NCBI RefSeq assembly: GCF_031769215.1
Contig: NW_026782030.1
Location: forward strand, 1 to 64,000
DNA length: 64,000 nt
Reading direction: 5' to 3'
DNA from: Ylistrum balloti
Lineage: Eukaryota
Shown here: in pieces, positions 1,106-19,010 of the stretch
How the letters are laid out: each line of letters begins with the position of its first letter
How positions within the stretch are numbered: position 1 is the stretch's first letter
Notes under the pieces: generated by a model
Told to the model about the DNA's origin: nothing
The model's input: only the letters and a program-made list of their open reading frames with translations
The model's database searches: none
Position numbers and translations under genes: made by a program

Positions 1106-1177
1106 TTCCCAAGCGGGGAATCGAACCCCGGCCGCCGCGGTGAGAGCGCGGAATCCTAACCACTAGACCACTTGGGA
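1106..1177 (-). tRNA. tRNA-Glu-CTC: tRNA-Glu(CTC), intact
   Basis: Minus strand TCCCAAG TG GTCT AGTGGTTA GGAT T CCGCG CTCTCAC CGCGG CGGC CGGGG TTCGATT CCCCG CTTGGGA A: 72-nt cloverleaf, A and B boxes, TTTT just downstream. Confidence 0.97.
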
Positions 1178-1782
1178 CATGTGTATTGAGACGACTTGAC
1201 TGTTTGTGCTTGACGGTCTCGTAACAATTTGCAGCAGGAGCAATAATAACGGTTCCTCTAACGTTAGACATTGGAACTGTGTACACTGTTACTCTTGTGG
1301 TGGCTAAGGCGGATGGTTCGTCATATATGTATGGGATGTGGAACAATTATACATAACCGGATCAAGTGAATAGCACAGTTCGCGGAGCCTTAACTAGAAA
1401 GTTATTTGAGTTAGACGTTGTCAGTCTGAATCCGAGTAGTGTTGATGTTATCGACCAATCTGTTTTCACAGGTTAGTTCTAGCTCGAAATTCACCTACAC
1501 GGATACAGTGTTTTAAAAGTTCACGAACACATAACTCAGATGTTCTTGGAAAATTGATGGAGATCATCTATGAATAGTATTTTATGTTTTCTTAATCTAG
1601 GGAAGCAAAATATGAATTTAATTGAGAACACCACACCGTCATTGATTAAAATAAGTATAATTAGGTACCAAACTTGCGAATCTTTTACGAAATACATGGA
1701 TAACTTCAACGCGAATTCAATTCCACAATGATAATTTCCTTAACGTGAAAACGTTAAGTACGATTTGACAGCAACTTATCAG

Positions 1783-1808
1783 GTCAGGAGGGCCGAGCGG
1801 TCTAAGGC
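1783..1808 (+). pseudogene. 26-nt 5' stub of tRNA-Leu (T8G)
   Basis: gtcaggagggccgagcggtctaaggc matches Leu nt 1-26 except position 8, then jumps to the start of a duplicated ~565-bp block. Confidence 0.9.
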
Positions 1809-2367
1809 AATGCTAACTGTTCCTCTAACGTTAAACATTGGAACTGTGTACACTGTTACTCTTGTGGTGGCTAAGGCGGATGGTTCGTCATCTGTATATT
1901 GGATATGGAACAATTATACAGAAGCGAATCATGTGAATAGCACAGTTCGCGGAGCCTTAACTAGAAAATTATTTAAGTTAGACGTTGTCAGTCCGAATAG
2001 TGTTGATGTTATCCATCAATCTGTTTATCATACTTAAACTTTTCTCGAAATTCGTCTTCTCAGATACAGTACTTAAAAGTTTACGAACACATAACTTTGC
2101 TTTTCTTGGAAATTTTATGGAGATGGTCTATGAATATTATTTGATATTTTCTTAATTTGATGAAACAATATTTTCTTAATTTGTTGAAACAAAATATGTA
2201 TTTAATTGAGAACAAGGCACCGTCATTGATTGGAATAAGTATAACTAAGCACAAAACTGGCGAGTCTTATACGAAATACATGGATAACTTTAACGTGAAT
2301 TCAATTGCACAACGATATTATCCTGAACGGGCAGAGTTTCAAGTGCGATTTGATCCACATTTGTCAA

Positions 2368-2451
2368 GTCAGGATGGCCGAGCGGTCTAAGGCGCTGCGT
2401 TCAGGTCGCAGTCGGGTCTTCCCGGCGTGGGTTCGAATCCCACTTCTGACA
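2368..2451 (+). tRNA. tRNA-Leu-CAG: tRNA-Leu(CAG), intact
   Basis: 84-nt class II cloverleaf, anticodon loop TTCAGGT, long variable arm, GGTTCGAATCC B box, T6 terminator at 2457-2462. Confidence 0.97.
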
Positions 2452-3615
2452 TACAGTTTTTTCGTCGTTAACATTCACCTCACTTAACATTACTTCGTAC
2501 CGGTAAAAAGGTTTTTTCTAATATATACCTCCACAGGACGGTTGCTTAACATACATTGTTATAGTTGATAACTAATTCAATGATTCTATAATATTTTAAT
2601 TTCTTATTAGACTTGTCAGCAATTTCAAACATTCAAAAATCTCTTTATAATAAAGAAACCAGATGTGTCAGTGTGACATGAAAACCCTCCCTGGTAACCA
2701 ATGAAAATGTCCTTGTCATATATTATTTGAATAGTTGTACCCATACCTTTATCAATATGTGTTGGTGATTAGTTGAAGCAAGGCTCAAATCTACAGAATG
2801 AGCGTGATATGAAAGGGTTTTTTTTGTTTTGTTTTGTTTTTTGTTTTTTCTTTGTTTTTTTTTTCGCGTTGAAGTCCAACCATGTCATGAATAGGCCAGA
2901 GGACATTACAAGAGGCCGCAAATCCCATCAGCAGTTTTTGCAAATGATTGTGAAATAAGATCGGGAGTTTTGCCTGTTGATAGTAAAGAATATGAAGTAG
3001 AACCGGAGTTGTGTCTGTTGAGTTTGTGGTGAAGAATCTTAAATGAAATTGGAGACATAATTTTAGATTCTATGGCAAATAATTCTAAAAGAATTTTGCC
3101 GATTTCAGCTGAAACACACATTGGTAGAGATGGTGATATCAAATTTATACCCTGCTTACATGATCTAGGGTTAATGATATGAAAATATATCAAATAAAAG
3201 TTATATACAACAGAGAAAACAATACCATAAGTTACTAATCAAGATCATGATGGACACACAAAATGACAGATATCTAAAACCAGAATAATAAATTGTCAAA
3301 TATTGTTGCTCGTTTGCCATCTTTCATAAACTTCCACTCTAGATCGATCAGGCTCTGACGTTTGCTTATTTCCTTATATACCAAAATATACTGTTTCCGG
3401 GAGAATTTCTTAAAACATACCAAGATCAATGACAATTACTTTGCACACAAGCTTTTGACTGTAACGAATAATATCATGAGCGAATTCTTTCTTTTTTTCG
3501 CTTGATGGCAACTGACATTTCAATATCTGTCTTCACTAAAAAGTACATTGGAAAAAGCAAACGATGACAGGCAATGCCAGTTTTTAGGCCATTTCAATGC
3601 GGGAAGAAAAATGTA

Positions 3616-3687
3616 TTCCCAAGCGGGGAATCGAACCCCGGCCGCCGCGGTGAGAGCGCGGAATCCTAACCACTAGACCACTTGGGA
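3616..3687 (-). tRNA. tRNA-Glu-CTC: tRNA-Glu(CTC), intact
   Basis: Identical to the 1106-1177 copy; T5 terminator (plus-strand a3607-3611). Confidence 0.97.
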
Positions 3688-4292
3688 CATGTGTATTGAG
3701 ACGACTTGACTGTTTGTGCTTGACGGTCTCGTAACAATTTGCAGCAGGAGCAATAATAACGGTTCCTCTAACGTTAGACATTGGAACTGTGTACACTGTT
3801 ACTCTTGTGTTGGCTAAGGCGGATGGTTCGTCATCTATGTATGGGATGTGGAACAATTATACATAACCGGATCAAGTGAATAGCACAGTTCGCGGAGCCT
3901 TAACTAGAAAGTTATTTGAGTTAGACGTTGTCAGTCTGAATCCGAGTAGTGTTGATGTTATCGACCAATCTGTTTTCACAGGTTAGTTCTAGCTCGAAAT
4001 TCACCTACACAGATACAGTGTTTTAAAAGTTCACGAACACATTACTCAGATTTTCTTGGAAAATTGATGGAGATCATCTATGAATAGTATTTAATGTTTT
4101 CTTCATCTGGGGAAGCAAAATATGGATTTAATTTAAAACACCACACCGTCATTGATTGAAATAAGTATAACTAAGTACTGAACTGGCGAATCTTTCACGA
4201 AATACATGGATAACTTCAACGCGAATTCAATTCCACAATGATATTATCATTAACGTGAAAACCTTTAGTATGATTTGACAGCAACTTATCAA

Positions 4293-4318
4293 GTCAGGAG
4301 GGCCGAGCGGTCTAAGGC
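4293..4318 (+). pseudogene. 26-nt 5' stub of tRNA-Leu
   Basis: Same stub and junction as 1783-1808. Confidence 0.9.
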
Positions 4319-4881
4319 AATGATAACTGTTCCTCTAACGTTAAACATTGGAACTGTGTACACTGTTACTCTTGTGGTGGCTAAGACAGATGATTCGTCA
4401 CCTTTGTATGGGATGTGGAACAATTATACATAACCGAATCAAGTGAATAGCATAGTTAACGGAGCCTTAAATAGAAAATCCTTTGAGTTAGATGTTGCCG
4501 TCTGAATCCGAGTAGTGTTGATGTTATCCATCAATCTGTTTATCATACTTAAACTTTTCTCGAAATTCGTCTTCTCAGATACAGTACTTAAAAGTTCACG
4601 AACACATAACTTTGCTTTTCTTGGAAATTTTTGGAGATGGTCTATGAATATTATTTTATATTTTCTTAATTTGATGAAACAATATTTTCTTAATTTGCTG
4701 AAACAAAATATGTATTTAATTGAGAACAAGCCACCGTCATTGATTGGAATAAGTATAACTAAGCACAAAACTGGCGAGTCTTATACGAAATACATGGATA
4801 ACTTTAACGTGAATTTAATTGCACAACGATATTATCCTTAACGGGCAGAGTTTCAAGTGCGATTTGATCCACATTTGTCAA

Positions 4882-4965
4882 GTCAGGATGGCCGAGCGGT
4901 CTAAGGCGCTGCGTTCAGGTCGCAGTCGGGTCTTCCCGGCGTGGGTTCGAATCCCACTTCTGACA
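4882..4965 (+). tRNA. tRNA-Leu-CAG: tRNA-Leu(CAG), intact
   Basis: Identical to 2368-2451, followed by a T-tract. Confidence 0.97.
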
Positions 4966-5941
4966 TACAGTTTTTTCATCATTCACCTCACTTAACATTA
5001 CATCGTACCGGTAAAAAGGTTTTTTCTAATATATACTTCCACAGGACGGTTGCTTAACACACATTGTTATAGTTGATAACTAATTCAATGATTCTATAAT
5101 CTTATCAGACTTGTAAGCTAATCCACTTTGAATTTCAAATATACAAAAATCTCTTTATAATAAAGAGACCAGATGTGTCGGTGCGACATGAAAACCCTCG
5201 CTGACAACCAATGAAATGCTGGTTATTAGTTGAAAAACAAGGCTCACATCTACAGAATGAGCGTGTTATGAAAGTTTTTTTAAATTTTTTTTTCGCGTCG
5301 AAGTCCAACAATGTCATGAATAGGCCAGAGGACATTACAAGAGGCCGCAAATCCATAAGCAGTTTCTGCAAATGATTGTGAATTAAGATTAGGAGTTTTG
5401 CCTTTTGATAGTAAAGGATATGAAGTAGAACCACTGCAGATGTGTCTGTTGAGTTGGTGATCAAGAATCCTAAGTGGAATTGGAGACATAGCTTTTGATT
5501 CTATGGCAAATAATCGGAAATAAATTTTGTCGATTTCAGCCTGCAGACACATCGGTAGAGATTGTGATATCACAGTTATACCCTGAGGGAGAAAACAACA
5601 CCATAACTTACTAATCAAGATCATGATGGACACACAAGACAAAAATAACTAGAACCTGTCCATAAATTGACAAATAGGGTTGCTCGTTTTTCATCTTTCA
5701 TAAACCTCCACTCTAGATCGATCAGACCTTCTTAAAACATACCAAGATCAATGACAATTACTTCTTTGCACACAAGCTTTTGACTGTAACGAATAATATG
5801 ATGAGCTCATTGTTTCTTTTTTTCCGCTTGGTGACTACTCACATTTCAATATCTGTCTTCACTAAAAAGTACATTGGAAAAAGCAAACGATGACAGGCAA
5901 TGCCAGTTTTTAGGCCATTTCAATGCGGGAAGAAAAATGTA

Positions 5942-6013
5942 TTCCCAAGCGGGGAATCGAACCCCGGCCGCCGCGGTGAGAGCGCGGAATCCTAACCACT
6001 AGACCACTTGGGA
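5942..6013 (-). tRNA. tRNA-Glu-CTC: tRNA-Glu(CTC), intact
   Basis: Identical 72-nt copy with T5 terminator. Confidence 0.97.
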
Positions 6014-6618
6014 CATGTGTATTGAGACGACTTGACTGTTTGTGCTTGACGGTCTCGTAACAATTTGCAGCAGGAGCAATAATAACGGTTCCTCTAACGT
6101 TAGACATTGGAACTGTGTACACTGTTACTCTTGTGTTGGCTAAGGCGGATGGTTCGTCATCTATGTATGGGATGTGGAACAATTATACATAACCGGATCA
6201 AGTGAATAGCACAGTTCGCGGAGCCTTAACTAGAAAGTTATTTGAGTTAGACGTTGTCAGTCTGAATCCGAGTAGTGTTGATGTTATCGACCAATCTGTT
6301 TTCACAGGTTAGTTCTAGCTCGAAATTCACCTACACAGATACAGTGTTTTAAAAGTTCACGAACACATTACTCAGATTTTCTTGGAAAATTGATGGAGAT
6401 CATCTATGAATAGTATTTAATGTTTTCTTCATCTGGGGAAGCAAAATATGGATTTAATTTAAAACACCACACCGTCATTGATTGAAATAAGTATAACTAA
6501 GTACTGAACTGGCGAATCTTTCACGAAATACATGGATAACTTCAACGCGAATTCAATTCCACAATGATATTATCATTAACGTGAAAACCTTAAGTTTGAT
6601 TTGACAGCAACTTATCAA

Positions 6619-6644
6619 GTCAGGAGGGCCGAGCGGTCTAAGGC
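6619..6644 (+). pseudogene. 26-nt 5' stub of tRNA-Leu
   Basis: Same stub as in the other units. Confidence 0.9.
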
Positions 6645-7207
6645 AATGATAACTGTTCCTCTAACGTTAAACATTGGAACTGTGTACACTGTTACTCTTG
6701 TGGTGGCTAAGACAGATGATTCGTCACCTTTGTATGGGATGTGGAACAATTATACATAACCGAATCAAGTGAATAGCATAGTTCACGGAGCCTTAAATAG
6801 AAAATCCTTTGAGTTAGATGTTGCCGTCTGAATCCGAGTAGTGTTGATGTTATCCATCAATCTGTTTATCATACTTAAACTTTTCTCGAAATTCGTCTTC
6901 TCAGATACAGTACTTAAAAGTTCACGAACACATAACTTTGCTTTTCTTGGAAATTTTTGGAGATGGTCTATGAATATTATTTTATATTTTCTTAATTTGA
7001 TGAAACAATATTTTCTTAATTTGCTGAAACAAAATATGTATTTAATTGAGAACAAGCCACCGTCATTGATTGGAATAAGTATAACTAAGCACAAAACTGG
7101 CGAGTCTTATACGAAATACATGGATAACTTTAACGTGAATTTAATTGCACAACGATATTATCCTTAACGGGCAGAGTTTCAAGTGCGATTTGATCCACAT
7201 TTGTCAA

Positions 7208-7291
7208 GTCAGGATGGCCGAGCGGTCTAAGGCGCTGCGTTCAGGTCGCAGTCGGGTCTTCCCGGCGTGGGTTCGAATCCCACTTCTGACA
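7208..7291 (+). tRNA. tRNA-Leu-CAG: tRNA-Leu(CAG), intact
   Basis: Identical 84-nt copy followed by a T-tract. Confidence 0.97.
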
Positions 7292-8449
7292 TACAGTTTT
7301 TTCATCATTCACCTCACTTAACATTACTTCGTACCGGTAAAAAGGTTTTTTCTAATATATACCTCCACAGGACGGTTGCTTAACACACATTGTTATAGTT
7401 GATAACTAATTCAATGATTCTATAATCTTATCATTTCTTATCAGACTTGTAAGCTAATCCACTTTGAATTTCAAATATACAAAAATCTCTTTATAATAAA
7501 GAAATCAGATGTGTCAATATGACATGAAAACCCTCCCTGGTAACCAATGAAACATGTTCTTGTTATATATTATTTGAATAGTTGTACCCATACCTTTATC
7601 AATATGTGTTGGTGATTAGTTGAAGCAAGGCTCACATCTACACTATGAGCGTAATATGAAATCTTTTTGATTTTATTTTGAGTCGAAGTCCAACAACGTC
7701 ATGAATAAGCCAGAGGACAAAAGGCCGCAATCCCATCAGCAGTTTTTGCAAATGATTGTGAAATAAGATCGGGAGTTTTGCCTGTTGATAGTAAAGAATA
7801 TGAAGTAGAACCGGAGTTGTGTCTGTTGAGTTTGTGGTTAAGAATTTTAAGTGAAACTGGAGACATAACTTTAGATTCTATGGCAAATAATTCTAAAAGA
7901 ATTTTGCCGATTTCAGCTTAAACACACATCGGTAGAGATGGTGATATCAAATTTATACCCTGATTGCATGATTTAGGGTTAATAATCTGAAAAGAAATAT
8001 CAAATAAAAATTATATACAACAGAGAAAACAATACCATAAGTTACTAATCAAGATCATGATGGACACACAAAATGACAGATATCTAAAACCAGAATAATA
8101 AATTGTGAAATATTGTTGCTCGGTTGCCATCTTTCATAAACTTCCATTCTAGATCGCTAAGGCTCTCCCGTTTACTTATTTCCTTATCTACAAAAATATA
8201 CTGTTTCCGGGAAAATTTCCTAAAACGTACCAAGATCAATGACCATTATTTTCCACACAAACTTCTGACTGTAGACGAATGATAGCATCAGCTACATCTG
8301 ATTTTTTATTTTATTTATTGATATTTTGTTTGTAGATAACTCACATTTCAATATTTGTCTTCGCTAAAATGTAGACAAGCACAAACAAAGAACGACGTGC
8401 AATGTCAGCATGAGTTGATCGGCCGTTTGAATGCGGGAAGAAAAATGTA

Positions 8450-8501
8450 TTCCCAAGCGGGGAATCGAACCCCGGCCGCCGCGGTGAGAGCGCGGAATCC
8501 T
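8450..8501 (-). pseudogene. tRNA-Glu 3' part (nt 21-72), interrupted by Tx1 element A
   Basis: ttcccaagcg...gagcgcggaatcc(t) runs directly into a T11 tract (the element's poly(A) on the minus strand) instead of aaccactagacc. Confidence 0.95.
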
Positions 8502-8550
8502 TTTTTTTTTTCTTTAAAAATAAATCTTTTAATGTTCCCAGCGAATTGGA

Positions 8551-8574
8551 CCTTCGGGGTTGGGGCCCCGAAGG
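8551..8574 (-). promoter_or_regulatory. 3'UTR stem-loop of element A (9-bp stem, loop CCCCAA in RNA sense)
   Basis: ccttcgggg ttgggg ccccgaagg is a perfect inverted repeat, conserved by covariation with 14455-14478. Confidence 0.8.
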
Positions 8575-8730
8575 CTCCTCACAGTTCATATAAAATACAA
8601 ATATAAACAATTCATACAATACATAAAATCACAGGTTTGCTAAATAATAAAGAATCACATTTTTTAAAAATTGCGTTGATGCAAACATACAATGTTTACT
8701 AATACTGATGAAACAAATAACTTGACATAG

Positions 8731-11700
8731 TCATATAGATAAGACGTAGGAAGCTAAATTTACATTACTTAGAGAAAAGTCGACTTCCTTTAATAATTTA
8801 TTGTCAGCAACAATATATTTCTTGAACAAACTGCATTGTTTTTTCATCTGGTAGTAATGTTTGATATAATCAAAATACTTTCTGAAAGTATACTTAAAAA
8901 AGCCCTTCAGATTTAATTTAGACATCCCATTAACAACCAGATTACGCCTTCTAAGAATGCTAAAGCGTACTGTACCTAAAAGGAAGTTGATGAAAAAAGG
9001 ATTTGTTTGTTTAACCTTGCTAGTGTAACCCAGAAGTATAAGTTTACCAAGATAAACATCTGAAAGATAGGTCTGATCAGCATCGGAGAAAAGCTTCTTA
9101 CTTAATTTGTCAATGTAGGCCAAAAATTCTGCAAGGTCTGAACACTCAACAAACAGATGCTGTAGGGTTTCCTTCTCGGAATTGCACAATAGACAAGTGT
9201 CACTGTCAACTTTCCCTATTTTCTTTAACTTTTCCATTGTAAAAATAGTATTATGCACAATACGAAAATGAACATCAATGATGTCACAAGGTAGAAATTG
9301 CAAATACATAATGGAAAAGACGCGAGGAAGACAAACATTCTGAAAAATTTCTGACCAGTACCCCGAAGATTTAGGACATTTGAAGCAATAACGGATAAAA
9401 CAAGCATAAATATCACGAGTAGTTTTGGGGCGTAGCTGAATAGTAGTCCCATTTCCATCTTTGTAAGTAACACACAGCCCTGGCTCTGTTCTTCTATTTG
9501 TATGTACATTAGTTAAAATCACATCTTTATAATTGACTGGAATAGATTTCATAATAGTATCATAATGAGATAACAAGATATCATTAGAGATATCGAGGTT
9601 AGCTTCTTTAACTACCTTAGCTACTGTGCTTGAGGAGAGGAACTTTGACACAACTTCAAGCGTTAGATGCTTAACCTTTACAATACCCGCCCTAGCAAAA
9701 CACTCAATAAAAACAGGTTTCTCATTGTCCATAATGTTAGAGTTAAAAAACAAAGGCTGTTCATAAATGAAAAAGGTATCCATATTAAAACAAACCTTAT
9801 TTACTGCCTGAAAGGCATACCATGCTTTCAACATTTCGCGGTAAACAATAGGCACTGTTCTTAAATATTTATCAGGAAATTTACAATAAATTACTTCAGC
9901 ATCAAGATTTAAACCAAGTATTTTGTTGAAAAAATAGCTGCACATATTCTTCCAGACAGCAGTACAAGACGTGTCCAACCATCTAAATAAAAATTTTAAT
10001 CTGAAAGATCTCAATTTTAATTCAATGTCAGGTACATTTAAACCACCTTCCTTTCTTTTACCAATAATAGTGTCATAGGCTACTAAATGTGATCTACCAT
10101 GCCATAAAAAATCAATAGATAGTTTCTTGATATTACTAATAACTGACAGAGGAATAGTCTGTGAAGTTAGACAATACCAACACCTGGACATCAATAAGGA
10201 ACTGATTACAGTAGCTCTTCCTTGTATAGTCAATTGCCTCTGCGACCACATTCTAAGAATATTTTTAATAGACACAACTTTACTATCCCAGTTCTTTTCG
10301 TTACACATGTGTATATCTATACCGACAAATACACCCAACACACATATAACCTTATCACATAATTTGATACGTAGTTTTTCAAGTTCATCCATTGTGATAT
10401 TACCTTTACCAATACATAACATTTCGGACTTATCTTTATTTATCTTGGCACCAGAGCCCTTACTGTAGACTTCTAACAGGTTAAAAACATGTTTAAAAGT
10501 TTCCTTATTTCCAAGTGTCAACGTCGTGTCGTCTGCGTGTTGATACACCTTAGACTCAAATTCATTATGAGGAACTTTGATACCAGAAATATCTGGAGAC
10601 TTTAAAAACATATTCCCCAGAGGTTCCGCGGCCAAAACGTAAAGCATCGCCGAAATAGGACACCCTTGTCTCACTGAATTTCCAATAGAGATAAAATTTG
10701 TCAAATTACCATTATATTTGACAGAACTGGAGATTTTAGTGTAAAAAATCTTGATCCAATCAACGAAATTCTCACCAAAACCAAATTTTTTCAAAAGTTT
10801 AAATAAATACGGATGACTAACACGATCAAAAGCCTTTTCTTGATCAATTTTGAGGATGTACCCTTCAAGTTCCTCTTGATTTGTTAAATCAATGATATCA
10901 CGAACGCTAAAAATGGTGTCCGAAATATCCCGCCCTATAACACAGCACGACTGAAATTCTGAAATGATTGAGGGTAAAACAGACTTAAGGCGATCTGACA
11001 TTACCCGAGCAAGGATCTTGTAGTCTACATTAAGGAGACTAATTGGTCTCCAATTTTTCAGAAGAGACTTATCCCCCCTTTTCTTGTATACAAGGTTAAT
11101 AACACATCGTCTCATAGTTCTTGTCAATTCTTTTTCAGCCCAGATACTTTCTACTACCCGAGGAAAAACATATTTTAATTCATCAAAAAAGTTACAATAA
11201 AACTCAACAGTCAGGCCGTCCAAGCCGGGACTCTTACATTTGGACATAGTAGACAAAGCTTTTTGTATCTCATCAACAGTAATAGCAGAGTCACACTTAT
11301 CTCTATCCTCCACAGAGATAGTTTTGTCAATAAAAGATAAAAGATTATCAATATCATCATCATTTGTCTCAATACAATTATATAAATCATTATAAAAATT
11401 GAATATTTCATTAGACATTTCATCACCAGTTGTCAATATTTTCCCATCAACATCACGTAAACATTTTATAGAATTGCAGTTCTGTCTATATTTCTCCAGC
11501 TTTAAAAAATAACTGGTATTTTTATCACCATCAACGGCCCATTTACACTTAGACCTTAACACAGCACCATTACATCTCTCTTTTTCAAACTTTTCCAAAC
11601 TTTGTCGGAGCTCTTCATATTTAGTACAATCAAAAGGTTTACCATTGGCTATATCACAGGAAAATTCCTGTAGCTTATTTTGAATTTTATAATGTTCAGA

Positions 11701-12639
11701 CATCCGTTTTTTACTTCGATCCTTTCCATATATCTGAGAAAATCTCTTTATTTTAAATTTCAGATTATCCCACCACACTGAAGGTTCATCGATAAACAAT
11801 GAACATTTCCGTTCCTCAGAAATTAAATTTCTTATTTTAACATTATAATCTTCTTCAAGTAAAAACCAATTGTTCAAAATCCATATACCAGGGCCTCTTT
11901 CCTCAATACAAGTATCCAATTTCATTGTAACTAAAGAATGATCACTAAACGTTGTATCATTATAATAGATATTCTGCACATAGGTACTTAAATGTCTGGA
12001 AACCAAGAAGTAGTCGATTCTACTCTGTGACAAATTTCCATTACGTACCTGTTTACGGGAAAAAGCCGAACAATTTCTATTTCTACTGCGCCACAAATCA
12101 GAAACATTGCAAGTAAACATAAGGCTTTTTAATGAAGCCAGACTTGGGGTTGTATGATGTGCAGTAAATCCAGTCCTATCAAAACTGGAGAATGTGGAGT
12201 TAAAATCCCCACCAAAAATAATTTTATCTGCATCATCCGACAACCACTTTTTCAAATTATCAAAAAATATTTTTCTCTCACCATCAACATTTGGTGCATA
12301 AACATTAACTAAATCCCACTCTAAATTCTCAATGGATATTTTCAAACGTAAAACTCTCCCGTCATAACCCTCATACTGGATAACATTATTTTTCCATTTA
12401 TTAGAAATAAGGAACGCAACTCCCTTTCTGTGGTTAGTACTGTTATCATAAATAATTTTACCATTCCATAAATGTTTTATTTGATTTACAAAATCATCAT
12501 CCCAAAAGGTCTCTTGCAGGAAAGCAATATCACAAAAATTACTATTTACCAGTGCAAAAACACTTTTAACTTTATCCACATCTCTGAGGCCATTCACATT
12601 AAATGATACAAAACTAAGCATAATAATAGCAAAAAACAT
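8731..12639 (-). CDS. Tx1 ORF2, 1302 aa: APE endonuclease + reverse transcriptase + C-terminal CCHC motif
   Basis: APE motifs SFNVNG, LQET, NVYAPN, GGDFN, SRIDYFLVS, SDH. RT motifs KSPGLDGLTVEFY, WRPISLLNVDYKILA, DQEKAFDRV, VRQGCPIS, QHADD. C-terminal CLLC-x7-HLFVEC. No stops or frameshifts. Confidence 0.97.
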   Translation of the reverse strand: MFFAIIMLSFVSFNVNGLRDVDKVKSVFALVNSNFCDIAFLQETFWDDDFVNQIKHLWNGKIIYDNSTNHRKGVAFLISNKWKNNVIQYEGYDGRVLRLKISIENLEWDLVNVYAPNVDGERKIFFDNLKKWLSDDADKIIFGGDFNSTFSSFDRTGFTAHHTTPSLASLKSLMFTCNVSDLWRSRNRNCSAFSRKQVRNGNLSQSRIDYFLVSRHLSTYVQNIYYNDTTFSDHSLVTMKLDTCIEERGPGIWILNNWFLLEEDYNVKIRNLISEERKCSLFIDEPSVWWDNLKFKIKRFSQIYGKDRSKKRMSEHYKIQNKLQEFSCDIANGKPFDCTKYEELRQSLEKFEKERCNGAVLRSKCKWAVDGDKNTSYFLKLEKYRQNCNSIKCLRDVDGKILTTGDEMSNEIFNFYNDLYNCIETNDDDIDNLLSFIDKTISVEDRDKCDSAITVDEIQKALSTMSKCKSPGLDGLTVEFYCNFFDELKYVFPRVVESIWAEKELTRTMRRCVINLVYKKRGDKSLLKNWRPISLLNVDYKILARVMSDRLKSVLPSIISEFQSCCVIGRDISDTIFSVRDIIDLTNQEELEGYILKIDQEKAFDRVSHPYLFKLLKKFGFGENFVDWIKIFYTKISSSVKYNGNLTNFISIGNSVRQGCPISAMLYVLAAEPLGNMFLKSPDISGIKVPHNEFESKVYQHADDTTLTLGNKETFKHVFNLLEVYSKGSGAKINKDKSEMLCIGKGNITMDELEKLRIKLCDKVICVLGVFVGIDIHMCNEKNWDSKVVSIKNILRMWSQRQLTIQGRATVISSLLMSRCWYCLTSQTIPLSVISNIKKLSIDFLWHGRSHLVAYDTIIGKRKEGGLNVPDIELKLRSFRLKFLFRWLDTSCTAVWKNMCSYFFNKILGLNLDAEVIYCKFPDKYLRTVPIVYREMLKAWYAFQAVNKVCFNMDTFFIYEQPLFFNSNIMDNEKPVFIECFARAGIVKVKHLTLEVVSKFLSSSTVAKVVKEANLDISNDILLSHYDTIMKSIPVNYKDVILTNVHTNRRTEPGLCVTYKDGNGTTIQLRPKTTRDIYACFIRYCFKCPKSSGYWSEIFQNVCLPRVFSIMYLQFLPCDIIDVHFRIVHNTIFTMEKLKKIGKVDSDTCLLCNSEKETLQHLFVECSDLAEFLAYIDKLSKKLFSDADQTYLSDVYLGKLILLGYTSKVKQTNPFFINFLLGTVRFSILRRRNLVVNGMSKLNLKGFFKYTFRKYFDYIKHYYQMKKQCSLFKKYIVADNKLLKEVDFSLSNVNLASYVLSI

Positions 12640-13935
12640 TCAAGTGCTTTTAAGTTTTTTAGTTTTCTTTTTCCTTTGAGGTTTGTGGACCTTTCCAGAA
12701 TCAACACGTGACTTTAAAAATTCCCGCGAACGCAAAATGGAATCAGTCACTAGAGCACCCTCTACCTCGTCCTCCTCACTTACATCAGAACCCTTGCTAT
12801 CTGGCCACATCGACCCAGAAATAGGTACAGGAGTACATGAGCCATCAAAATCTATGATGTCACCAAAGCAAACATCCCCATTAGGGGCGAGATTACCATC
12901 TGCCATATCTGTGTCCTTCTCTAACTTTTCAGGTACAGTAATGTTGGGATTAACCTGCGAGACCGTGACAACCTCTGAAACCGTGTTATTACTTTCAATA
13001 TGCTCAACCGGAACATTCACCTGTATACACTCTGCATTAACTTCCTCATCTCCATCCAAATCCTGTAATTTCTCACTGACGACATTTATCTGTGTGTTAT
13101 CGCTACCTGTGTAATCACCGCAGTCAAACATGTCACACTTGCACGAATCCAACGTTTCCTTGCATTTGTTACATTGTTCACGGCTACCAAAACAAATACA
13201 GTCATACCGATTACACCCCGTGCACAATCGTATGGCATTGTCCCGCCTCGGCGCGCGCGAACAATCACACTCAAACCTCACCTCACCACATCGGGTACAC
13301 GGCTCAGTCGTACATGCACGTTTGAAATGCCCCTGGGCATTGCATCGGAAGCACTTAAACTGTGGACACTGACGAAACAGGTGTTGGTCACTATAACACA
13401 GAGTGCAAACTTTCACCTGGTTGTCGTGTATAACACGAAAGTAATCATTCCCGAATTTGATACTGTAGGGTAACGATTTCAGAGATGGTGGAAACTTTAC
13501 CCTAACATATCTTGTACCATCCGCTATCTGAGTTCCTTTGTAAAATCGTCGCTTAATAGGCGAAACAATTTCAATGTCCAGACTTTCAAGCTTTTCAAGG
13601 ATATCGTCATCAGATATATATGCTGGTAGATATAAAAAGCTCACCATCAGAAACTTCTGTGTTAAATCATAACACTCGTATGTCCTACCTTCAATATCAA
13701 TTCCCTGCAATAACATGTTCGTCATTGCACGGCAATCGAGAGTGACCTCGTATAGGTTCCCAGATTTAGGGACACACGCCAAAACGGTTCCATCCCCACA
13801 CAACTGAGTAATGGTATCAATAACCTTGCCAGCCTTCACAACTTTATTATCCAAAATGTCAACACAAACAGTATTTTCTTTTAAATAGTGTCTTTTTTCA
13901 CTTTGTTTATTACGAGAGGCGTCCTGAGACGCCAT
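12640..13935 (-). CDS. Tx1 ORF1, ~431 aa gag-like nucleic-acid-binding protein
   Basis: The track start at 13989 is TTG; the first ATG is at 13935 (gagATGG, MASQD). Tx1-type VSFLYLPAYISD...GTRYV region, CCHC knuckles CTLCYSDQHLFRQC and CFRCNAQGHFKRAC, acidic linker, basic C-terminus. Confidence 0.92.
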   Translation of the reverse strand: MASQDASRNKQSEKRHYLKENTVCVDILDNKVVKAGKVIDTITQLCGDGTVLACVPKSGNLYEVTLDCRAMTNMLLQGIDIEGRTYECYDLTQKFLMVSFLYLPAYISDDDILEKLESLDIEIVSPIKRRFYKGTQIADGTRYVRVKFPPSLKSLPYSIKFGNDYFRVIHDNQVKVCTLCYSDQHLFRQCPQFKCFRCNAQGHFKRACTTEPCTRCGEVRFECDCSRAPRRDNAIRLCTGCNRYDCICFGSREQCNKCKETLDSCKCDMFDCGDYTGSDNTQINVVSEKLQDLDGDEEVNAECIQVNVPVEHIESNNTVSEVVTVSQVNPNITVPEKLEKDTDMADGNLAPNGDVCFGDIIDFDGSCTPVPISGSMWPDSKGSDVSEEDEVEGALVTDSILRSREFLKSRVDSGKVHKPQRKKKTKKLKST

Positions 13936-14355
13936 CTCGCCCCGGTAAACACCGGTAACAAAAATGTCAACAAAACTGACGAAATACAATCAATTGTCAC
14001 ATCATCAATATTTTGTTGTAAACACGAATATCCAATGATTATATAAGTCAGAAAAGTAGGGTTAAAAACCCCGTCTTACCACCGATGTTTGACGATTATA
14101 CAACAGGTAAACAAACGACGTCCATTGACCTTGAAATCATCACCGGAACCCAAAACATACCAAGTTCAATGACCATTACTTTGCATACAAGCTTTTGACT
14201 GTAAGGAATAATATGATGAGCTCATTGTTTCTTTTTTTTCGCTTGATGACAACTGACATTTCAATATCTGTCTTCACTACAAGTACACAGGAAAAAGCAA
14301 ACGATGACGGGCAATGCCAGTTTTTAGGCCATTTCAATGCGGGAAGAAAAATGTA

Positions 14356-14407
14356 TTCCCAAGCGGGGAATCGAACCCCGGCCGCCGCGGTGAGAGCGCG
14401 GAATCCT
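14356..14407 (-). pseudogene. tRNA-Glu 3' part (nt 21-72), interrupted by Tx1 element B
   Basis: Same junction as at 8501: gagcgcggaatcc followed by T10. Confidence 0.95.
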
Positions 14408-15166
14408 TTTTTTTTTCTTGTAAAAATAAAAATTTTATTATCCCAGCAATAGGGTCTCAAGGGTTGGGGCCCTTGAGATTCCTCACAGTGTAATCATTTC
14501 ATAATCATGTATTAAAAATAGATAAAAGGTAAAAAGAAAAATCACATGTTTCATAACAAAGTAACCATAACTATCACAGACGAAAGTTTTACAAATTAAC
14601 TGAGACACGATCGTCAATCACAGATACAATATTGTTATCACAAATAAAGTATTTTCGGAAAAGTGAAACATTGTTTTTCTTTCGATAGTGATTAAAAGCA
14701 TAGTTGATAAATTTTTTGACTGTAAACTTAAAGAATCGCAATATTGGAACACTACCTTCATTTAACATGACCATATTTCTTCTTTTGTAAATACAAAATC
14801 GTGCCACACTCAAAACAAAGTTTATGAAGTACGAGTTAACATTTTTTGAATTTCTGCCACAGCCTAAAAGAACTAGCCAATCATAATTGAGTACATTCAC
14901 AATTTCCGAAGGCACTCTAATAAACAAACTATCCAACATATCGGTTAAAAAGACGTTAAGGGTAGATAACTCTGGACATCCAATAAATAAATGAAAAAGA
15001 TTACCTGGTGGCTACTGGCATACCGGACATGTATTGAATCTGACATACCACACTTCATCAATTTCTTTTTCGTAAAAATAGCGTTATGTGCAACTTTAAA
15101 ATGGAGCTCGACACACTCAGCCGGATAATAAGGCACGTGTACCATTCTATAAATACTGTCGACCTC
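14408..15166 (-). mobile_element. 5'-truncated Tx1 element B (different family), decayed, 13-14 bp TSD
   Basis: Encodes only the ORF2 C-terminus (VHVPYYPAECVELHFKVAHNAIFT...CPVCQ*PPGNLFHLFIGC...FINFVLSVARFCIYKRRN) with one frameshift and one in-frame TAG. AATAAA plus poly(A). TSD gagcgcggaatcc(t) at 14394-14407 and 15167-15180. Confidence 0.93.
14455..14478 (-). promoter_or_regulatory. 3'UTR stem-loop of element B (9-bp stem, loop CCCCAA in RNA sense)
   Basis: tctcaaggg ttgggg cccttgaga is a perfect inverted repeat. Confidence 0.8.
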
Positions 15167-15200
15167 GAGCGCGGAATCCTAACCACTAGACCACTTGGGA
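15167..15200 (-). pseudogene. tRNA-Glu 5' part (nt 1-34, includes the TSD)
   Basis: gagcgcggaatcctaaccactagaccacttggga, followed by the normal upstream flank. Confidence 0.95.
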
Positions 15201-15805
15201 CATGTGTATTGAGATGACTTGACTGTTTGTGCTTGACGGTCTCGTAACAATTTGCAGCAGGAGCAAAGATAACGGTTCCTCTAACGTTACACATTGGAAC
15301 TGTGTACACTGTTACTCTTGTGGTGGCTAAGGCGGATGGTTCGTCATGTACGTATGGGATGTGGAACAACTATACATAAACGAATCAAGTGAATAGCACA
15401 GTTAACGGAGTTTTAACTAGAAGATTCCTTGAGTTAGACGTTGTCAGTCTGAATCCGAGTAGTGTTGATGTTATCGACCAATCTGTTTTCACAGGTTAGT
15501 TCTAGCTCGAAATTCACCTACACAGATATAGTGTTTTAAAAGTTCACGAACACATCACTCAGATGTTCTTGGAAAATTGATGGAGATCATCTATGAATAT
15601 CATTTAATGTTTTCGTAATCTGGGGAAGCAAAATATGAATTTAATTGAAAACGCCACACCGTCATTGATTGAAATAAACATAACTTAGTACTGAACTGGC
15701 GAATCTTATTCGAAATACATGGATAACTTCAACGCGAATTCAATTCCACAATGATATTATCATTAAAGTGAAAACGTTTAGCATGATTTGACAGCAACTT
15801 ATCAG

Positions 15806-15831
15806 GTCAGGAGGGTCGAGCGGTCTAAGGC
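15806..15831 (+). pseudogene. 26-nt 5' stub of tRNA-Leu
   Basis: gtcaggagggtcgagcggtctaaggc (one extra substitution), followed by a small deletion relative to other units. Confidence 0.85.
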
Positions 15832-16363
15832 AACTGTGTACACTGTTACTCTTGTGGTGGCTAAGACAGATGGTTCGTCATCTTTGTATGGGATGTGGAA
15901 CAATTATACATAACCGAATCAAGTGAATAGCACAGTTCACGGAGCCTTAAATAGAAAATTCTTTGAGTTAGATGTTTCCTTCTGAATCCGAGTAGTGTTG
16001 ATGTTATCCATCAATCTGTTGATCATGCTTAAACTTTTTCTCGAAATTCGTCTTCTCAGATACAGTACTTAAAGGTTCACGAACACATAACTTTGCTTTT
16101 CTTGGAAATTTTATGGAGATGATCTATGAATATTATTTTATATTTTCTTAATTTGATGAAACAATATTTTCTTAATTTGTTGAAACAAAATATGTATTTA
16201 ATTGGGAACAACGCACCGTCATTGATTGGAAACACTATAACAAAGCACAAAACTGGCGAGTCTTATACGAAATACATGGATAACTTTAACGTGAATTTAA
16301 TTGCACAACGATGTTATCCTTAACGGGCAGAGTTTCGAGTGCGATTTGATCCACATTTGTCAA

Positions 16364-16447
16364 GTCAGGATGGCCGAGCGGTCTAAGGCGCTGCGTTCAG
16401 GTCGCAGTCGGGTCTTCCCGGCGTGGGTTCGAATCCCACTTCTGACA
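16364..16447 (+). tRNA. tRNA-Leu-CAG: tRNA-Leu(CAG), intact
   Basis: Identical 84-nt copy followed by a T-tract. Confidence 0.97.
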
Positions 16448-17648
16448 TACAGTTTTTTCATCGTTAACATTCACCTCACTTAACATTACATCGTACCGGT
16501 AAAAAGGTTTTTTCTAATATATACCTCCACGGGACGGTTGCTTAACATACATTGTTATAGTTGATAATTAATTCAATAATTCTATAATCGTATCATTTCT
16601 TATCAGACTTGTAAGCAAATCGACTTTGAATTTCTAACATACAAAAATTTCTTGATAACAAAGAAACTAGATGTGTCGGTGCGACATAAAAACCCTTGCT
16701 GGCAACCAATGAAAATGTTCTTGTCATAAATTATTTGAATAGTTGTGCCCATACCTTTATCAAACTGTGTTGGTGATAAGTTGAATCAAGGCTCACATCT
16801 ACAGAATGAGCGTGATATGAAAGTTTTTTTTGTTTTTTTGTTTGTTTTTTTTTTTTTGTTTTTTTTTTTTGTTTTGTTTTTGCGTCGAAGTCAAACAACG
16901 TCATGAATAGGCCAGAGGACATTACAAGAGGCCGCAATACCACCAGCAGATTCTGCAAATGTTTGTGAAATAAAATAGGGAGTTTTGACAGTTGATAGTA
17001 AAGAATATGAAGTAGAACCGAAGTTGTGTCTGTTGAGTTTGTGGTCAAGAATCATAAGTGAAATTGGAGACATAACTTTAGATTCTATGGCAAATAATTC
17101 TAAATGAATTTTGCCGATTTCAGCTTACAGACACATTGGTAGAGATCGTGATATCAAATTTATACCCTGCTTGCATGATCTAGGGTTAATGATATGAAAA
17201 TATATATCAAATAAAAGTTATATACAACAGAGAAAACAATACCATAAGTTACTAATCTAGATCGTGATGGACACACAAATGACAGATATCTAAAACCAGA
17301 ATAATAAATTGTGAAATATTGTTGCTCGGTTGCCATCTTTCATAAACTTCCATTCTAGATCGATAAGGCTCTGATGTTTGCTTATTTCCTTATCTACAAA
17401 AATATACTGTTTCCGGGAAAATTTCCTAAAACGTACCAAGATCAATGACCATTATTTTTCACACAAGCTTCTGACTGTAGACGAATGATAGCATCAGCTA
17501 CATCTTATTTTATTTATTGATATTTTGTTTGTAGATAACTCACATTTCAATATTTGTCTTCCCTAAAATGTAGACAAGCACAAACAAAAAACGACGTGCA
17601 ATGCCAGCATGAGTTGATCGGCCGTTTGAATGCGGGAAGAAAAATGTA

Positions 17649-17720
17649 TTCCCAAGCGGGGAATCGAACCCCGGCCGCCGCGGTGAGAGCGCGGAATCCT
17701 AACCACTAGACCACTTGGGA
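17649..17720 (-). tRNA. tRNA-Glu-CTC: tRNA-Glu(CTC), intact
   Basis: Identical 72-nt copy. Confidence 0.97.
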
Positions 17721-18251
17721 CATGCATATTGAGACGACTTGACTGTTTGTGCTTGACATTGGAACTGTATACACTGTTACCCTTGTAGTGGCTAAGGCGG
17801 ATGGTTCGTCATCTATGTTTGGGATGTGGAACAATTATACATAACCGAATCATGAGAATATCACTGTTCACGGAGCGTTAAACAGAAAATTCTTTGAGTT
17901 AGACGTTGTCAGTCTGAATCCGAGTAGTGTTGATGTTATCCATCAATCTGTTAATCATACTTAAACTTTTCTCGAAATTCGCCTTCTCAGATACAGATCT
18001 TAAAAGCTCAAGAACACATGAACTCTGATTTTCTTTAAAGTTTTATGGAGATCATCTAAGAATATTATTTAACATTTTCTTAATTTGATGAAACAAAATA
18101 TGTATTTAATTGAGAACAAGGCACCGTCATTGATTGGAATAAGTATAACTAAGCACAAAACTGGCGAGTCTTATACGAAATACATGGATAACTTTAACGT
18201 GAATTTAATTGCACAATGATATTATTCTGAGCGGGCAGAGTTTTAAGTACG

Positions 18252-18899
18252 GAACTTCGCCCATCGTCTCTGTGGTTTTTGTGGAAACAGCTTTCCTCGT
18301 ATCAGTCTCATATTTGTAGTAGTGTGGCAAAATTATGGTTAATAAGTCCAAACTGTGAGCTGCTATGTGCCAAATGTAAAAGGAGGTCTTTGGACGCTCT
18401 AGCACATTGCTTACTTGATTGTAATCATCCAGATTTGGTTGCTTTTCGTGATGATTTTTTCACAAATATTGTTAACAATTTTCCCGTTGAACTGTACGTC
18501 ACACTAGATAATCTAGAAAGACAGGACTGTATTTGTATCATGTTAGGACACATACCTGACGATGTACGGGAACTACTCCCAGATGAAGAATATTGCACAA
18601 AGTTTGCATACGAGTGTTGTTGCTTTTCGGTTAAAGCTGTTGATTTCACTTTTCAGTGAATCTGTATATGTTCTTATTTGCATTCAAATGGAATACTTAT
18701 ATATATATATATATATTTGTATTATTGTCTCTAAATTATTTTCCCATTTCATATATTTTTCCATGGCTATTTTCGTCTAAGTACTATTCCTAATTGTCAT
18801 TAATATTGTATGTACCTTATATATTTGTATTAATTTTCTGATTCTTTGTCTTAAATTTGTAATGTACTCTTCATTTCTGGAGGAATAAAGTCAAAGAAG
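18252..18899 (+). mobile_element. 5'-truncated non-LTR retrotransposon 3' fragment (clade unresolved, RTE-X/CR1/L2-like)
   Basis: ORF 18279-18659 with C-x2-C-x8-H-x4-C (CAKCKRRSLDALAHCLLDC), AT-rich 3'UTR, AATAAA at 18884, short aag tail, 7-bp TSD aagtacg at 18245-18251 and 18900-18906. Confidence 0.8.
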
Positions 18900-18926
18900 A
18901 AGTACGATTTGACACTCATTTACCAA

Positions 18927-19010
18927 GTCATGATGGCCGAGCGGTCTAAGGCGCTGCGTTCAGGCTGCAGGCGGGTCTCCCCGGCGTAGGTTTGAATCCT
19001 ACTTGTGACA
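18927..19010 (+). tRNA. tRNA-Leu-CAG: Divergent tRNA-Leu(CAG), possibly pseudogenised (T-loop TTTGAAT)
   Basis: 84 nt with 9 substitutions versus the array copies. All stems still pair, but C56 is T. T5 tract follows. Confidence 0.8.

Follow-up and report, generated by a model that had tools for sequence, protein, structure and literature searches.

Two Tx1-like LINEs in the genome of Ylistrum balloti are inserted at the same base of two tRNA-Glu(CTC) genes, yet the families to which they belong are not restricted to tRNA-Glu: near-identical copies elsewhere in the genome are found at the matching position of many other tRNA genes and, for some families, at one fixed position of 5S rRNA genes. 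This is an unusually broad yet exact way of choosing a target. The two elements were first seen in a 64,000-nucleotide stretch (the window; contig NW_026782030.1, positions 1 to 64,000), for which an earlier note proposed a sequence-specific lineage that cuts within the tRNA-Glu gene body and uses the multicopy array as a safe harbour. The shared insertion point that the note described proved to be real, whereas its interpretation is only partly supported, and its central claim, a lineage specific for tRNA-Glu, does not hold.

Results

ARAGORN identifies four intact tRNA-Glu(CTC) and five tRNA-Leu(CAG) genes in a 2.5-kb array in the window, and two further Glu genes are split. The features of the split region are as follows:

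8450–8500 (−), 3′ part (nt 22–72) of a split tRNA-Glu(CTC) gene, the downstream flank of element A, identical to nt 22–72 of the intact gene at 5942–6013
8501–14151 (−), element A, a full-length Tx1-like LINE of 5651 bp, with poly(A) at 8501–8511
8526–8592 (−), 3′UTR hairpin of A (stem, CCCCAA loop, stem) plus a conserved tail motif
8731–12639 (−), ORF2 of A, 1302 aa, uninterrupted, with APE endonuclease (aa 11–234), RT (520–742) and zf-RVT (1107–1167)
12640–13989 (−), ORF1 of A (open frame of 449 codons, first ATG at 13935), with weak CCHC zinc-knuckle matches
14152–14355 (no strand assigned), normal array spacer (downstream flank of the next tRNA-Glu) joined directly to the 5′ end of A
14356–14406 (−), 3′ part (nt 22–72) of a second split tRNA-Glu(CTC) gene, with target site duplication (TSD) copy 1 at 14394–14406
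14407–15166 (−), element B, a 5′-truncated copy (760 bp) of a second family, with poly(A) at 14407–14416 and hairpin at 14431–14496
15167–15200 (−), 5′ part of the same tRNA-Glu gene (nt 1–34), with TSD copy 2 (nt 22–34) at 15167–15179

On the + strand, ...gagcgcggaatcc is followed by a T-tract at 8500/8501 and again at 14406/14407, and comparison with the intact gene at 5942–6013 places both junctions between tRNA nt 21 and 22, with each element in the sense of the tRNA and its poly(A) joined to nt 22. Element B is followed by a second copy of gagcgcggaatcc and then by tRNA nt 21–1, giving a 13-bp TSD of nt 22–34. Element A has no TSD. Its 5′ end is joined to array spacer about 205 bp downstream of the next tRNA-Glu gene, and alignment with other array units shows that the 5′ half of its target gene, a tRNA-Leu gene and about 2.3 kb of array are missing. 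This junction is spanned by contigs of four public DNA runs; these contigs showed no empty-site joints, which in an array says little. A and B represent different families, as the 760 bp of B does not match A by BLAST and ORF2 of A is 47% identical to that of a full-length B copy. They are therefore two independent insertions and not one duplicated event, as the earlier note had also held.

Both ORFs of A are open. Pfam finds Exo_endo_phos, RVT_1 and zf-RVT in ORF2 at the positions listed above, which together with the two ORFs and the A-tail are the features of a Tx1 element, although these are shared with the wider L1 group. NCBIfam and the protein Atlas added nothing beyond the APE and RT domains, and the best solved relatives of ORF2 are human LINE-1 ORF2p. 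In a comparison with solved structures, made without Repbase reference sequences, the endonuclease matches PDB 2v0r ("LTX"), reportedly the L1 endonuclease carrying the Tx1L β-hairpin loop (Repanas et al. 2007, PMC1950540), better than wild-type L1 endonuclease (72.8 against 53.6 bits), the loop aligning as VRNGNLSQS against VRDGHVSQS. This gives partial support to a grouping with Tx1L and not with L1. In ORF1, zf-CCHC and zf-CCHC_2 matches at aa 194–227 fall below the Pfam cut-offs, with cysteine-rich motifs visible in the translation.

We then examined the 3′ flanks of the other genomic copies, the check that the earlier note had itself named as able to overturn its proposal. Family A comprises three full-length copies, 98.2–98.3% identical and alike in length and 5′ end (GGGTTCCGG...): that in Glu-CTC in the window, one at nt 27/28 of a 5S rRNA gene (5′ flank 5S nt 1–27, with a TSD of about 11 nt) and one in Val-TAC (16-nt TSD). 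Their endonuclease-coding 780 nt differ by only 4–8 substitutions, none in the β-hairpin loop, while the 5S copy also has a 7-nt deletion. Element B is 98–100% identical to 11 other copies, and family B copies sit at the same D-loop/D-stem boundary of Glu-CTC, Glu-TTC, Val-CAC, Val-TAC, Gly-TCC, Ile-AAT and Leu-AAG genes, with TSDs made of each tRNA's own nt 22–34; two B copies lie outside any gene. Only 1 of 3 A copies and 2 of 11 B copies (one Glu-CTC, one Glu-TTC) adjoin a tRNA-Glu gene. That none of the five Leu genes of the window is hit, a point made in the earlier note, is a sampling effect, because B sits in a tRNA-Leu(AAG) gene on another contig with a 13-bp TSD.

Two further families and several subfamilies extend this picture. 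Family H copies (99% identical) are found in 5S genes (7 copies) and in Val-AAC, Val-CAC, Val-TAC, Gly-TCC and Ile-AAT, and family G in 5S only (3 of 3 copies). Other subfamilies are found in Lys-TTT, Lys-CTT, Gln-TTG, Thr-TGT, an Asn-like gene and tRNA-like heads, one of the latter being tested and found to be a dispersed repeat. B was never seen in a 5S gene and G never in a tRNA gene, and thus the families differ in preference. The endonuclease hairpin loop, compared between 5S-only, tRNA-only and dual families, is conserved in all and does not explain these preferences. In a quick tree, 5S users and tRNA users are interleaved.

All families share a 3′UTR hairpin kept by compensatory changes, with five of 11 pairs changing on both sides across 12 subfamilies; the corresponding covariance model scores 84.8 bits on A. 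It is probably the handle that the reverse transcriptase binds, a role inferred from sequence alone. Of 63 element tails found through this hairpin and classified by hand, 11 adjoin 5S genes, about 23 adjoin tRNA genes at the site and about 16 adjoin tRNA-like SINE heads, about 50 in total, while the flanks of about 10 could not be assigned. All of the 5S and tRNA-gene cases lie in the sense of the gene. This census is a lower bound, as only 150 of about 215,000 candidate tails were scored, and some copies lie on near-identical contigs (C30/C149/C1113) and may be alleles or duplicates, so that event counts, although not the number of distinct target types, are inflated. An Rfam scan of 20 loci with unassigned flanks returned only an intact 5S gene and a sub-threshold hammerhead, and no other Pol III RNA such as U6, 7SL or RNase P. 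Searches for public RNA runs found none on record as RNA, and no RNA run shows expression.

The rule that fits every case in tRNA genes is a first nick 2 nt 3′ of the invariant G18G19 at the end of box A, corresponding to the nt 21/22 boundary in most tRNAs and to 20, 21 or 22 nt from the tRNA 5′ end as the D-loop length varies. The second-strand break is loose, giving TSDs of 0–24 bp or a deletion. For families A, G and H the poly(A) end is also joined to nt 27/28 of 5S genes, a site that shares no motif with the tRNA site: a weight matrix built from 7 tRNA sites and scanned over a 5S repeat unit ranks the true 5S site 257th of 974 positions, and shifted or opposite-strand matches sought by eye (GGTT, NACCR) do not put the nick in register.

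Relatives elsewhere behave alike. In Mytilus edulis they are found in tRNA-His (17-bp TSD) and in Gly-CCC, and on metagenome or Logan contigs in Phe, Lys-CTT and Ile-TAT/Ile-AAT, with a relative 33% identical at the same 5S nt 27/28. Some of these use shifted positions in the D-arm (His 9/10, Ile 18/19, Gly-CCC 22/23).

Discussion

The earlier note was right in that the elements are APE-type, Tx1-like LINEs that insert with single-nucleotide precision, that they use multicopy small-RNA genes and that the two insertions are independent. We read A and B, with good confidence, as two members of a clade of Tx1-like non-LTR retrotransposons that integrate by target-primed reverse transcription inside genes transcribed by RNA polymerase III. 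What the flanks establish directly is the fixed structural position in many different tRNA genes, the fixed 5S position for families A, G and H, the orientation in the gene's sense, the loose second-strand break, the shared hairpin, and that tRNA-Glu(CTC) is only one of at least 13 tRNA targets. What we infer, and only tentatively, as it is somewhat less likely than not, is that the site is set by the bound Pol III machinery (the TFIIIC A-box module with TFIIIB and Pol III), which would take the same geometry on tRNA and 5S genes, and not by one DNA motif; contact with any of these factors is part of this inference. The register with G18G19 fits a factor bound to box A and direct DNA readout equally well.

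Target-specific LINEs are the main natural models for putting DNA into defined safe places in a genome, and the known ones each recognize one sequence. Here single families hit one exact structural position in tRNA genes, of which more than a dozen kinds are targeted, in tRNA-like SINE heads and in 5S genes, which asks how an APE-type endonuclease can be both so exact and so broad and gives a clean experimental contrast of two unrelated target sequences and one protein. The elements also disrupt Pol III genes instead of sparing them and go with array deletions, and they probably shape the turnover of tRNA and 5S arrays in these genomes. A truncated LINE tail placed just after box A is also a plausible starting point for new tRNA-derived SINEs. 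In a more far-reaching and rather unlikely view, which the data do not exclude, the clade would read the assembled Pol III transcription complex and not a DNA sequence, nicking the template strand at the downstream edge of the TFIIIC A-box module, about 26–28 bp from the start site, on both tRNA (type 2) and 5S (type 1) genes. It would then be the first LINE known to integrate inside Pol III genes guided by the transcription machinery, and a natural footprint of where that module sits on 5S genes.

In the literature searched, which did not include Repbase itself, we found no description of a Tx1 or other LINE family spanning many tRNA species plus 5S. Mutsu (Tx1 clade, zebrafish; Kojima and Fujiwara 2004, described in PMC5340908) is an APE-type LINE with two ORFs and a poly(A) tail that inserts at a fixed site in the 5′ half of 5S rRNA genes, in tandem arrays, with many copies having open ORFs. 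In target behavior, family G and the 5S copies of A and H resemble it. Mutsu subfamilies are reported as strictly 5S-specific, each with its own target sequence; A and H also enter many tRNA genes, and B was found in tRNA genes but not in 5S. Dewa (Tx1 clade, zebrafish; PMC3706591) likewise lives in tRNA gene arrays, but in the spacer of one array type, that of tRNA-Leu, whereas the present junctions lie inside the gene body, next to box A, in many kinds of tRNA gene. NeSL-1_TV (tRNA-Pro), LIN15_SM (tRNA-Arg) and LIN25_SM (tRNA-Glu) (PMC4640811) are non-LTR elements inserted inside tRNA genes that carry a different, restriction-like endonuclease (PD-(D/E)xK), each being reported for one tRNA species. 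Dada DNA transposons (PMC3706591, PMC8869645) target tRNA genes around box A and the anticodon, and also 5S genes, at times with loose specificity, as for Dada-tV in Val, Gly and Ala genes; these are DDE transposase elements with 6–7 bp TSDs, each family being tied to one or a few similar sequences, and no single family is reported to span more than 10 tRNA species plus 5S. Dictyostelium TRE5-A and DGLT-A and yeast Ty3 (PMC5006619, PMC5391098) are guided by the Pol III complex and use any tRNA gene regardless of its sequence, TRE5-A also profiling Pol III complexes on the rDNA element that carries 5S. They insert outside the gene (about 15–50 bp upstream or about 100 bp downstream) and spare it, while the elements described here split the gene at a fixed internal base; the breadth of targets and the missing common motif are compatible with such guidance.

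The main alternative, possible and only slightly less likely than guidance by the bound Pol III machinery, is direct DNA readout with two recognition modes, in which the endonuclease or another ORF2 domain would read the conserved 3′ end of box A (..GGTN, with the nick after N) in tRNA genes and, separately, an older, Mutsu-like 5S site, without any host factor. In its favor, the nick keeps register with G18G19 whatever the D-loop length, the shifted positions used by relatives look like evolving sequence specificity, the 5S site is conserved in the relative 33% identical, Tx1L and R1Bm endonucleases are sequence-specific in vitro (Christensen 2000 and Feng 1998, as cited in PMC8869645), and Dada-tV shows loose specificity across similar tRNAs. 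Against it, one protein family (A, with its near-identical endonuclease) would have to read two unrelated sequences, the tRNA-derived matrix finds no similarity at the 5S site, and an exact GGTTA at about nt 70 of the 5S gene is not used.

A secondary spread by recombination, gene conversion or segmental duplication between tRNA arrays is very unlikely. Some loci are indeed duplicated between contigs (loci L033 and L037 share one flank, and L121 and L122 are 99.6% identical), and one B copy has a Val-CAC 5′ flank and a Val-TAC 3′ flank, yet 5′-truncated copies of different lengths, with unrelated flanks, carry TSDs made of the target's own sequence in Glu-CTC, Glu-TTC, Ile-AAT, Leu-AAG, Gly-TCC and 5S. 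A lineage specific for the tRNA-Glu(CTC) gene body, for which the two insertions in the window speak, is refuted by the flanks of the other copies, which lie in 5S, Val, Gly, Ile and Leu genes.

Insertion of Two LINEs within the tRNA Array

Bases 1-19,000 hold a tandem array with a 2.5-kb period, in which tRNA-Glu(CTC) on the minus strand alternates with tRNA-Leu(CAG) on the plus strand. ARAGORN finds 4 intact Glu genes and 5 Leu genes, and two more Glu genes are split. The features relevant to the split genes are as follows.

5942-6013, minus strand: intact tRNA-Glu(CTC) gene used as the reference for numbering
8500/8501: junction of the first split Glu gene with the poly(A) of element A
8501-14151, minus strand: element A, 5651 bp
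14406/14407: junction of the second split Glu gene with the poly(A) of element B
14407-15166, minus strand: element B, 760 bp, 5'-truncated
15167-15179: second copy of the duplicated target, followed by tRNA nt 21-1

At both junctions the plus-strand text ...gagcgcggaatcc runs into a T-tract, and comparison with the intact gene places this point at the boundary between tRNA nt 21 and 22, with the poly(A) of a minus-strand element joined to nt 22. Element B is followed by a second gagcgcggaatcc, giving a clean 13-bp duplication of nt 22-34. In element A the ORF1 frame has 449 codons, with the first ATG at 13935 and only weak CCHC matches, whereas ORF2 comprises 1302 aa with APE endonuclease, RT and zf-RVT domains, and both frames are open. 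The 5' end of A is the true 5' end of its family, because two other copies start at the same base. Element A has no TSD and abuts ordinary array spacer about 205 bp downstream of the next Glu gene, so that about 2.3 kb of array was lost, including a Leu gene and the 5' third of the target. This junction is spanned by contigs of four public DNA runs from two studies. Target deletions instead of TSDs are found for two further full-length insertions (loci L126 and L127), and in all three cases (for A, at 14152) the 5' end of the element is joined about 95-205 bp downstream of the neighboring upstream tRNA gene (Glu, Thr, Gln), a spacing that may or may not be meaningful. Elements A and B belong to different families, as ORF2 of A and of a full-length B copy are 47% identical. 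The observation made in the earlier note, that two independent insertions sit at the same base of tRNA-Glu(CTC) genes, is thus confirmed in every detail.

Targets in the Rest of the Genome

The interpretation put forward in the same note, a lineage sequence-specific for the tRNA-Glu gene body, is not supported, as the rest of the genome changes the reading. The assembly containing the window (648 Mb) was searched with the last 800 bp of A, with B, with a pattern derived from the shared 3'UTR and with a covariance model of that region. Family A has three full-length copies, 98.2-98.3% identical. Next to the window copy in Glu-CTC, one copy sits in a 5S rRNA gene, its 5' flank being 5S nt 1-27 plus about 11 nt of duplicated target and its 3' flank starting at nt 28, and one sits in tRNA-Val(TAC), with nt 1-21 plus a 16-nt duplication as the 5' flank, its last 167 bp having been lost later. 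Over the 780 nt that encode the endonuclease, the 5S copy differs from the window copy by four substitutions and a 7-nt deletion and the Val copy by eight substitutions, none of these lying in the beta-hairpin loop. In one public run (X5) a contig continues from the 5' end of A at window position 14151 into CACCACTACACCA on the plus strand, which reads ..TGGTGTAGTGGTG in element sense. This would be another A copy joined directly, without duplication, to a tRNA 5' part ending 2 nt after GG, although only 13 bases are known.

For family B the 3' flanks of 11 copies (98-100% identical) were read, leaving out a further fragment on contig C1021 that lacks its 3' end. These copies are in Glu-CTC, Glu-TTC, Val-CAC (two loci with identical flanks, perhaps allelic), Val-TAC, Gly-TCC, Ile-AAT and Leu-AAG, while three further copies lie off the site: one at the 5' edge of a tRNA-like sequence, one in a 5S spacer and one in unassigned DNA. 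Truncated copies carry TSDs made of each tRNA's own nt 22-34, of 13 bp in Leu-AAG and 10-13 bp in Glu-TTC and Ile-AAT. A 107-bp B copy at locus L042 (G000:C469:179942-180972) is joined about 7 nt upstream of a tRNA-like sequence, near where its transcription would start and not at the usual internal site, and no TSD was seen. A full-length B copy at locus L125 (G000:C1113:47000-53500) has a Val-CAC 5' flank and a Val-TAC 3' flank. Its two copies of the 16-nt duplicated stretch differ at the first base of the anticodon, and seven extra bases lie at the 5' junction.

Family H copies are 99% identical. Seven are in 5S genes and the others in Val-TAC, Val-AAC (3), Val-CAC, Gly-TCC and Ile-AAT, with TSDs of 10-11 bp, 6-7 bp or 0 bp. 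Family G, with an ORF2 69% identical to that of A, was seen three times, always in 5S, with a 24-bp TSD where the 5' junction was read. More distant subfamilies adjoin Lys-TTT, Lys-CTT, Val-AAC, Gln-TTG, Thr-TGT, an Asn-like gene and several tRNA-like heads. For the one head examined, the sequence is a dispersed repeat with at least 40 diverged copies, which suggests a SINE. About 430 bp beyond a SINE-head insertion on contig C333 (L041:8-58, plus strand), there is a near-threshold match to the type III hammerhead ribozyme (45.8 bits against a gathering score of 48.5; E = 2e-7).

In total the flanks of 63 tails were read and classified by hand, because automatic pattern matching under-counts. 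Of these, 11 adjoin 5S genes, about 23 adjoin tRNA genes at the site, three adjoin tRNA genes further in, about 16 adjoin tRNA-like heads and about 10 are unassigned. These counts come from an incomplete census, are lower bounds and include some near-identical contigs (C30, C149, C1113), so that the number of distinct targets is the robust figure. Every insertion in a tRNA or 5S gene is in the gene's sense. Mixed arrays of 5S rRNA and tRNA-Val genes on contigs C30 (59-136 kb), C149 (738-790 kb), C1113 (whole 85 kb), C568 and C323 are heavily colonized by families A, B, G and H, with several elements per 10-20 kb. C1113 and part of C149 are 99.6% identical over 6 kb and may be allelic contigs. 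A search for expression data found none.

Position of the First Nick

Native gene sequences were recovered from intact neighbors. As the A before the junction cannot be told apart from the poly(A), the position is decided by tRNA-Leu(AAG), in which the TSD starts with T, as GGTC/TAAGG (the slash marking the nick). The rule that fits all tRNAs is a nick 2 nt 3' of G18G19, the last bases of box A. The distance from the 5' end of the tRNA is 20, 21 or 22 nt depending on D-loop length, so the site follows the GG and not the gene start, and the bases after the nick (nt 22-34) differ freely between targets. In 5S genes the junction is ...GAAAACA/CCGG, at nt 27/28. A weight matrix built from seven tRNA sites ranks that 5S position 257th of 974, and an exact GGTTA at about nt 70 of the 5S gene is not used. 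The first nick is therefore exact, whereas the second-strand break is variable (0-24 bp) or replaced by a deletion, as in other APE-type LINEs.

A Shared 3' Hairpin

All subfamilies end with a hairpin (stem, CCCCAA loop, stem), followed by a conserved CCTAT..TGGGA..AATAAA stretch and the A-tail. Across 12 subfamilies 92% of cells pair, and five of 11 pairs change on both sides. No shuffle of 500 reaches the observed covariation score, and sliding the partner by one column drops pairing to 68%. This fits a stringent-type LINE whose RT recognizes its own 3' end, a function inferred here from sequence alone.

Relatives in Other Organisms

The closest database proteins are 42-46% identical, and the named ones are from Mytilus. 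The targets of relatives are listed below, with P numbers as our handles.

Relatives of the elements, with target and position of insertion
Mytilus edulis P0015: tRNA-His, nt 9/10, 17-bp TSD
Mytilus edulis P0042: tRNA-Gly(CCC), nt 22/23
Metagenome P0006: tRNA-Phe, nt 21/22
Metagenome P0012: tRNA-Lys(CTT), nt 21/22
Logan contigs P0020 (one protein): Ile-TAT and Ile-AAT, nt 18/19
Metagenome P0067 (33% identical): 5S gene at ...A/CCGGTTCTCG, the same site as here
Holothuria P0072: a tRNA-like sequence

Many Logan contigs stop at the A-tail, as expected when the flanks differ between copies. In a quick ML tree (SH-aLRT support only, midpoint root), A and H pair, followed by G and then B, the Mytilus and metagenome tRNA users form the sister group, and the distant 5S user and the sea-cucumber element lie outside. 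Use of 5S and of tRNA genes is thus interleaved over deep divergence.

Comparison with Known Elements

Assignment to the Tx1 clade is likely, though it rests on partial evidence. The architecture fits, and the endonuclease matches PDB 2v0r (molecule name LTX), reportedly the L1 endonuclease chimera carrying the Tx1L hairpin loop, clearly better than it matches native L1 endonuclease. The nearest known kinds are Mutsu, for the 5S site; Dewa, in tRNA array spacers; the RLE-type tRNA-specific LINEs; Dada DNA transposons, which use box A, the anticodon region and 5S, sometimes loosely; and TRE5-A and Ty3, which use any tRNA gene but insert outside it. A LINE family that enters more than ten tRNA species and 5S at one exact base is described in none of the papers searched, a search that did not extend to Repbase, and the 2015 list of Tx1 targets names U2, U5, 5S, satellites, microsatellites and transposons.

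Target Site Recognition

What the analysis establishes is a clade of APE-type LINEs that integrates by TPRT into Pol III genes at fixed bases, always in the gene's sense, and with target ranges that are broad and differ by family; how the site is found, including any contact with host factors, is inferred. We tentatively favor, at somewhat less than even odds, guidance by the bound Pol III machinery, on the grounds that one near-identical protein uses two unrelated sequences, that heads of putative SINEs sharing little beyond the promoter boxes are also used, that orientation is fixed, and that 5S and tRNA use travel together in the tree. Furthermore, the tRNA site lies at the 3' edge of box A, which, with a short 5' leader, is about as far from the transcription start as 5S nt 27. 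TFIIIC takes the same orientation on 5S and tRNA genes. Direct DNA readout with two modes remains possible and is only slightly less favored, being supported by the register with G18G19 and by the shifted, narrower sites of relatives.

One natural experiment, although a single case, is suggestive. At a tRNA-Ile(AAT) gene carrying a nested double insertion (locus L083, G000:C580:616593-617259), the poly(A) of an H copy is followed by GAGCGTCGTGCTA, then by a 22-nt remnant (TAAAAGAT plus an A-run) that looks like the extreme tail of another family, and then by GAGCGTCGTGCTA again and the rest of the tRNA. This represents a 13-bp TSD around an almost empty insertion, which left two copies of nt 22-34, and the later H insertion used the copy still preceded by box A.
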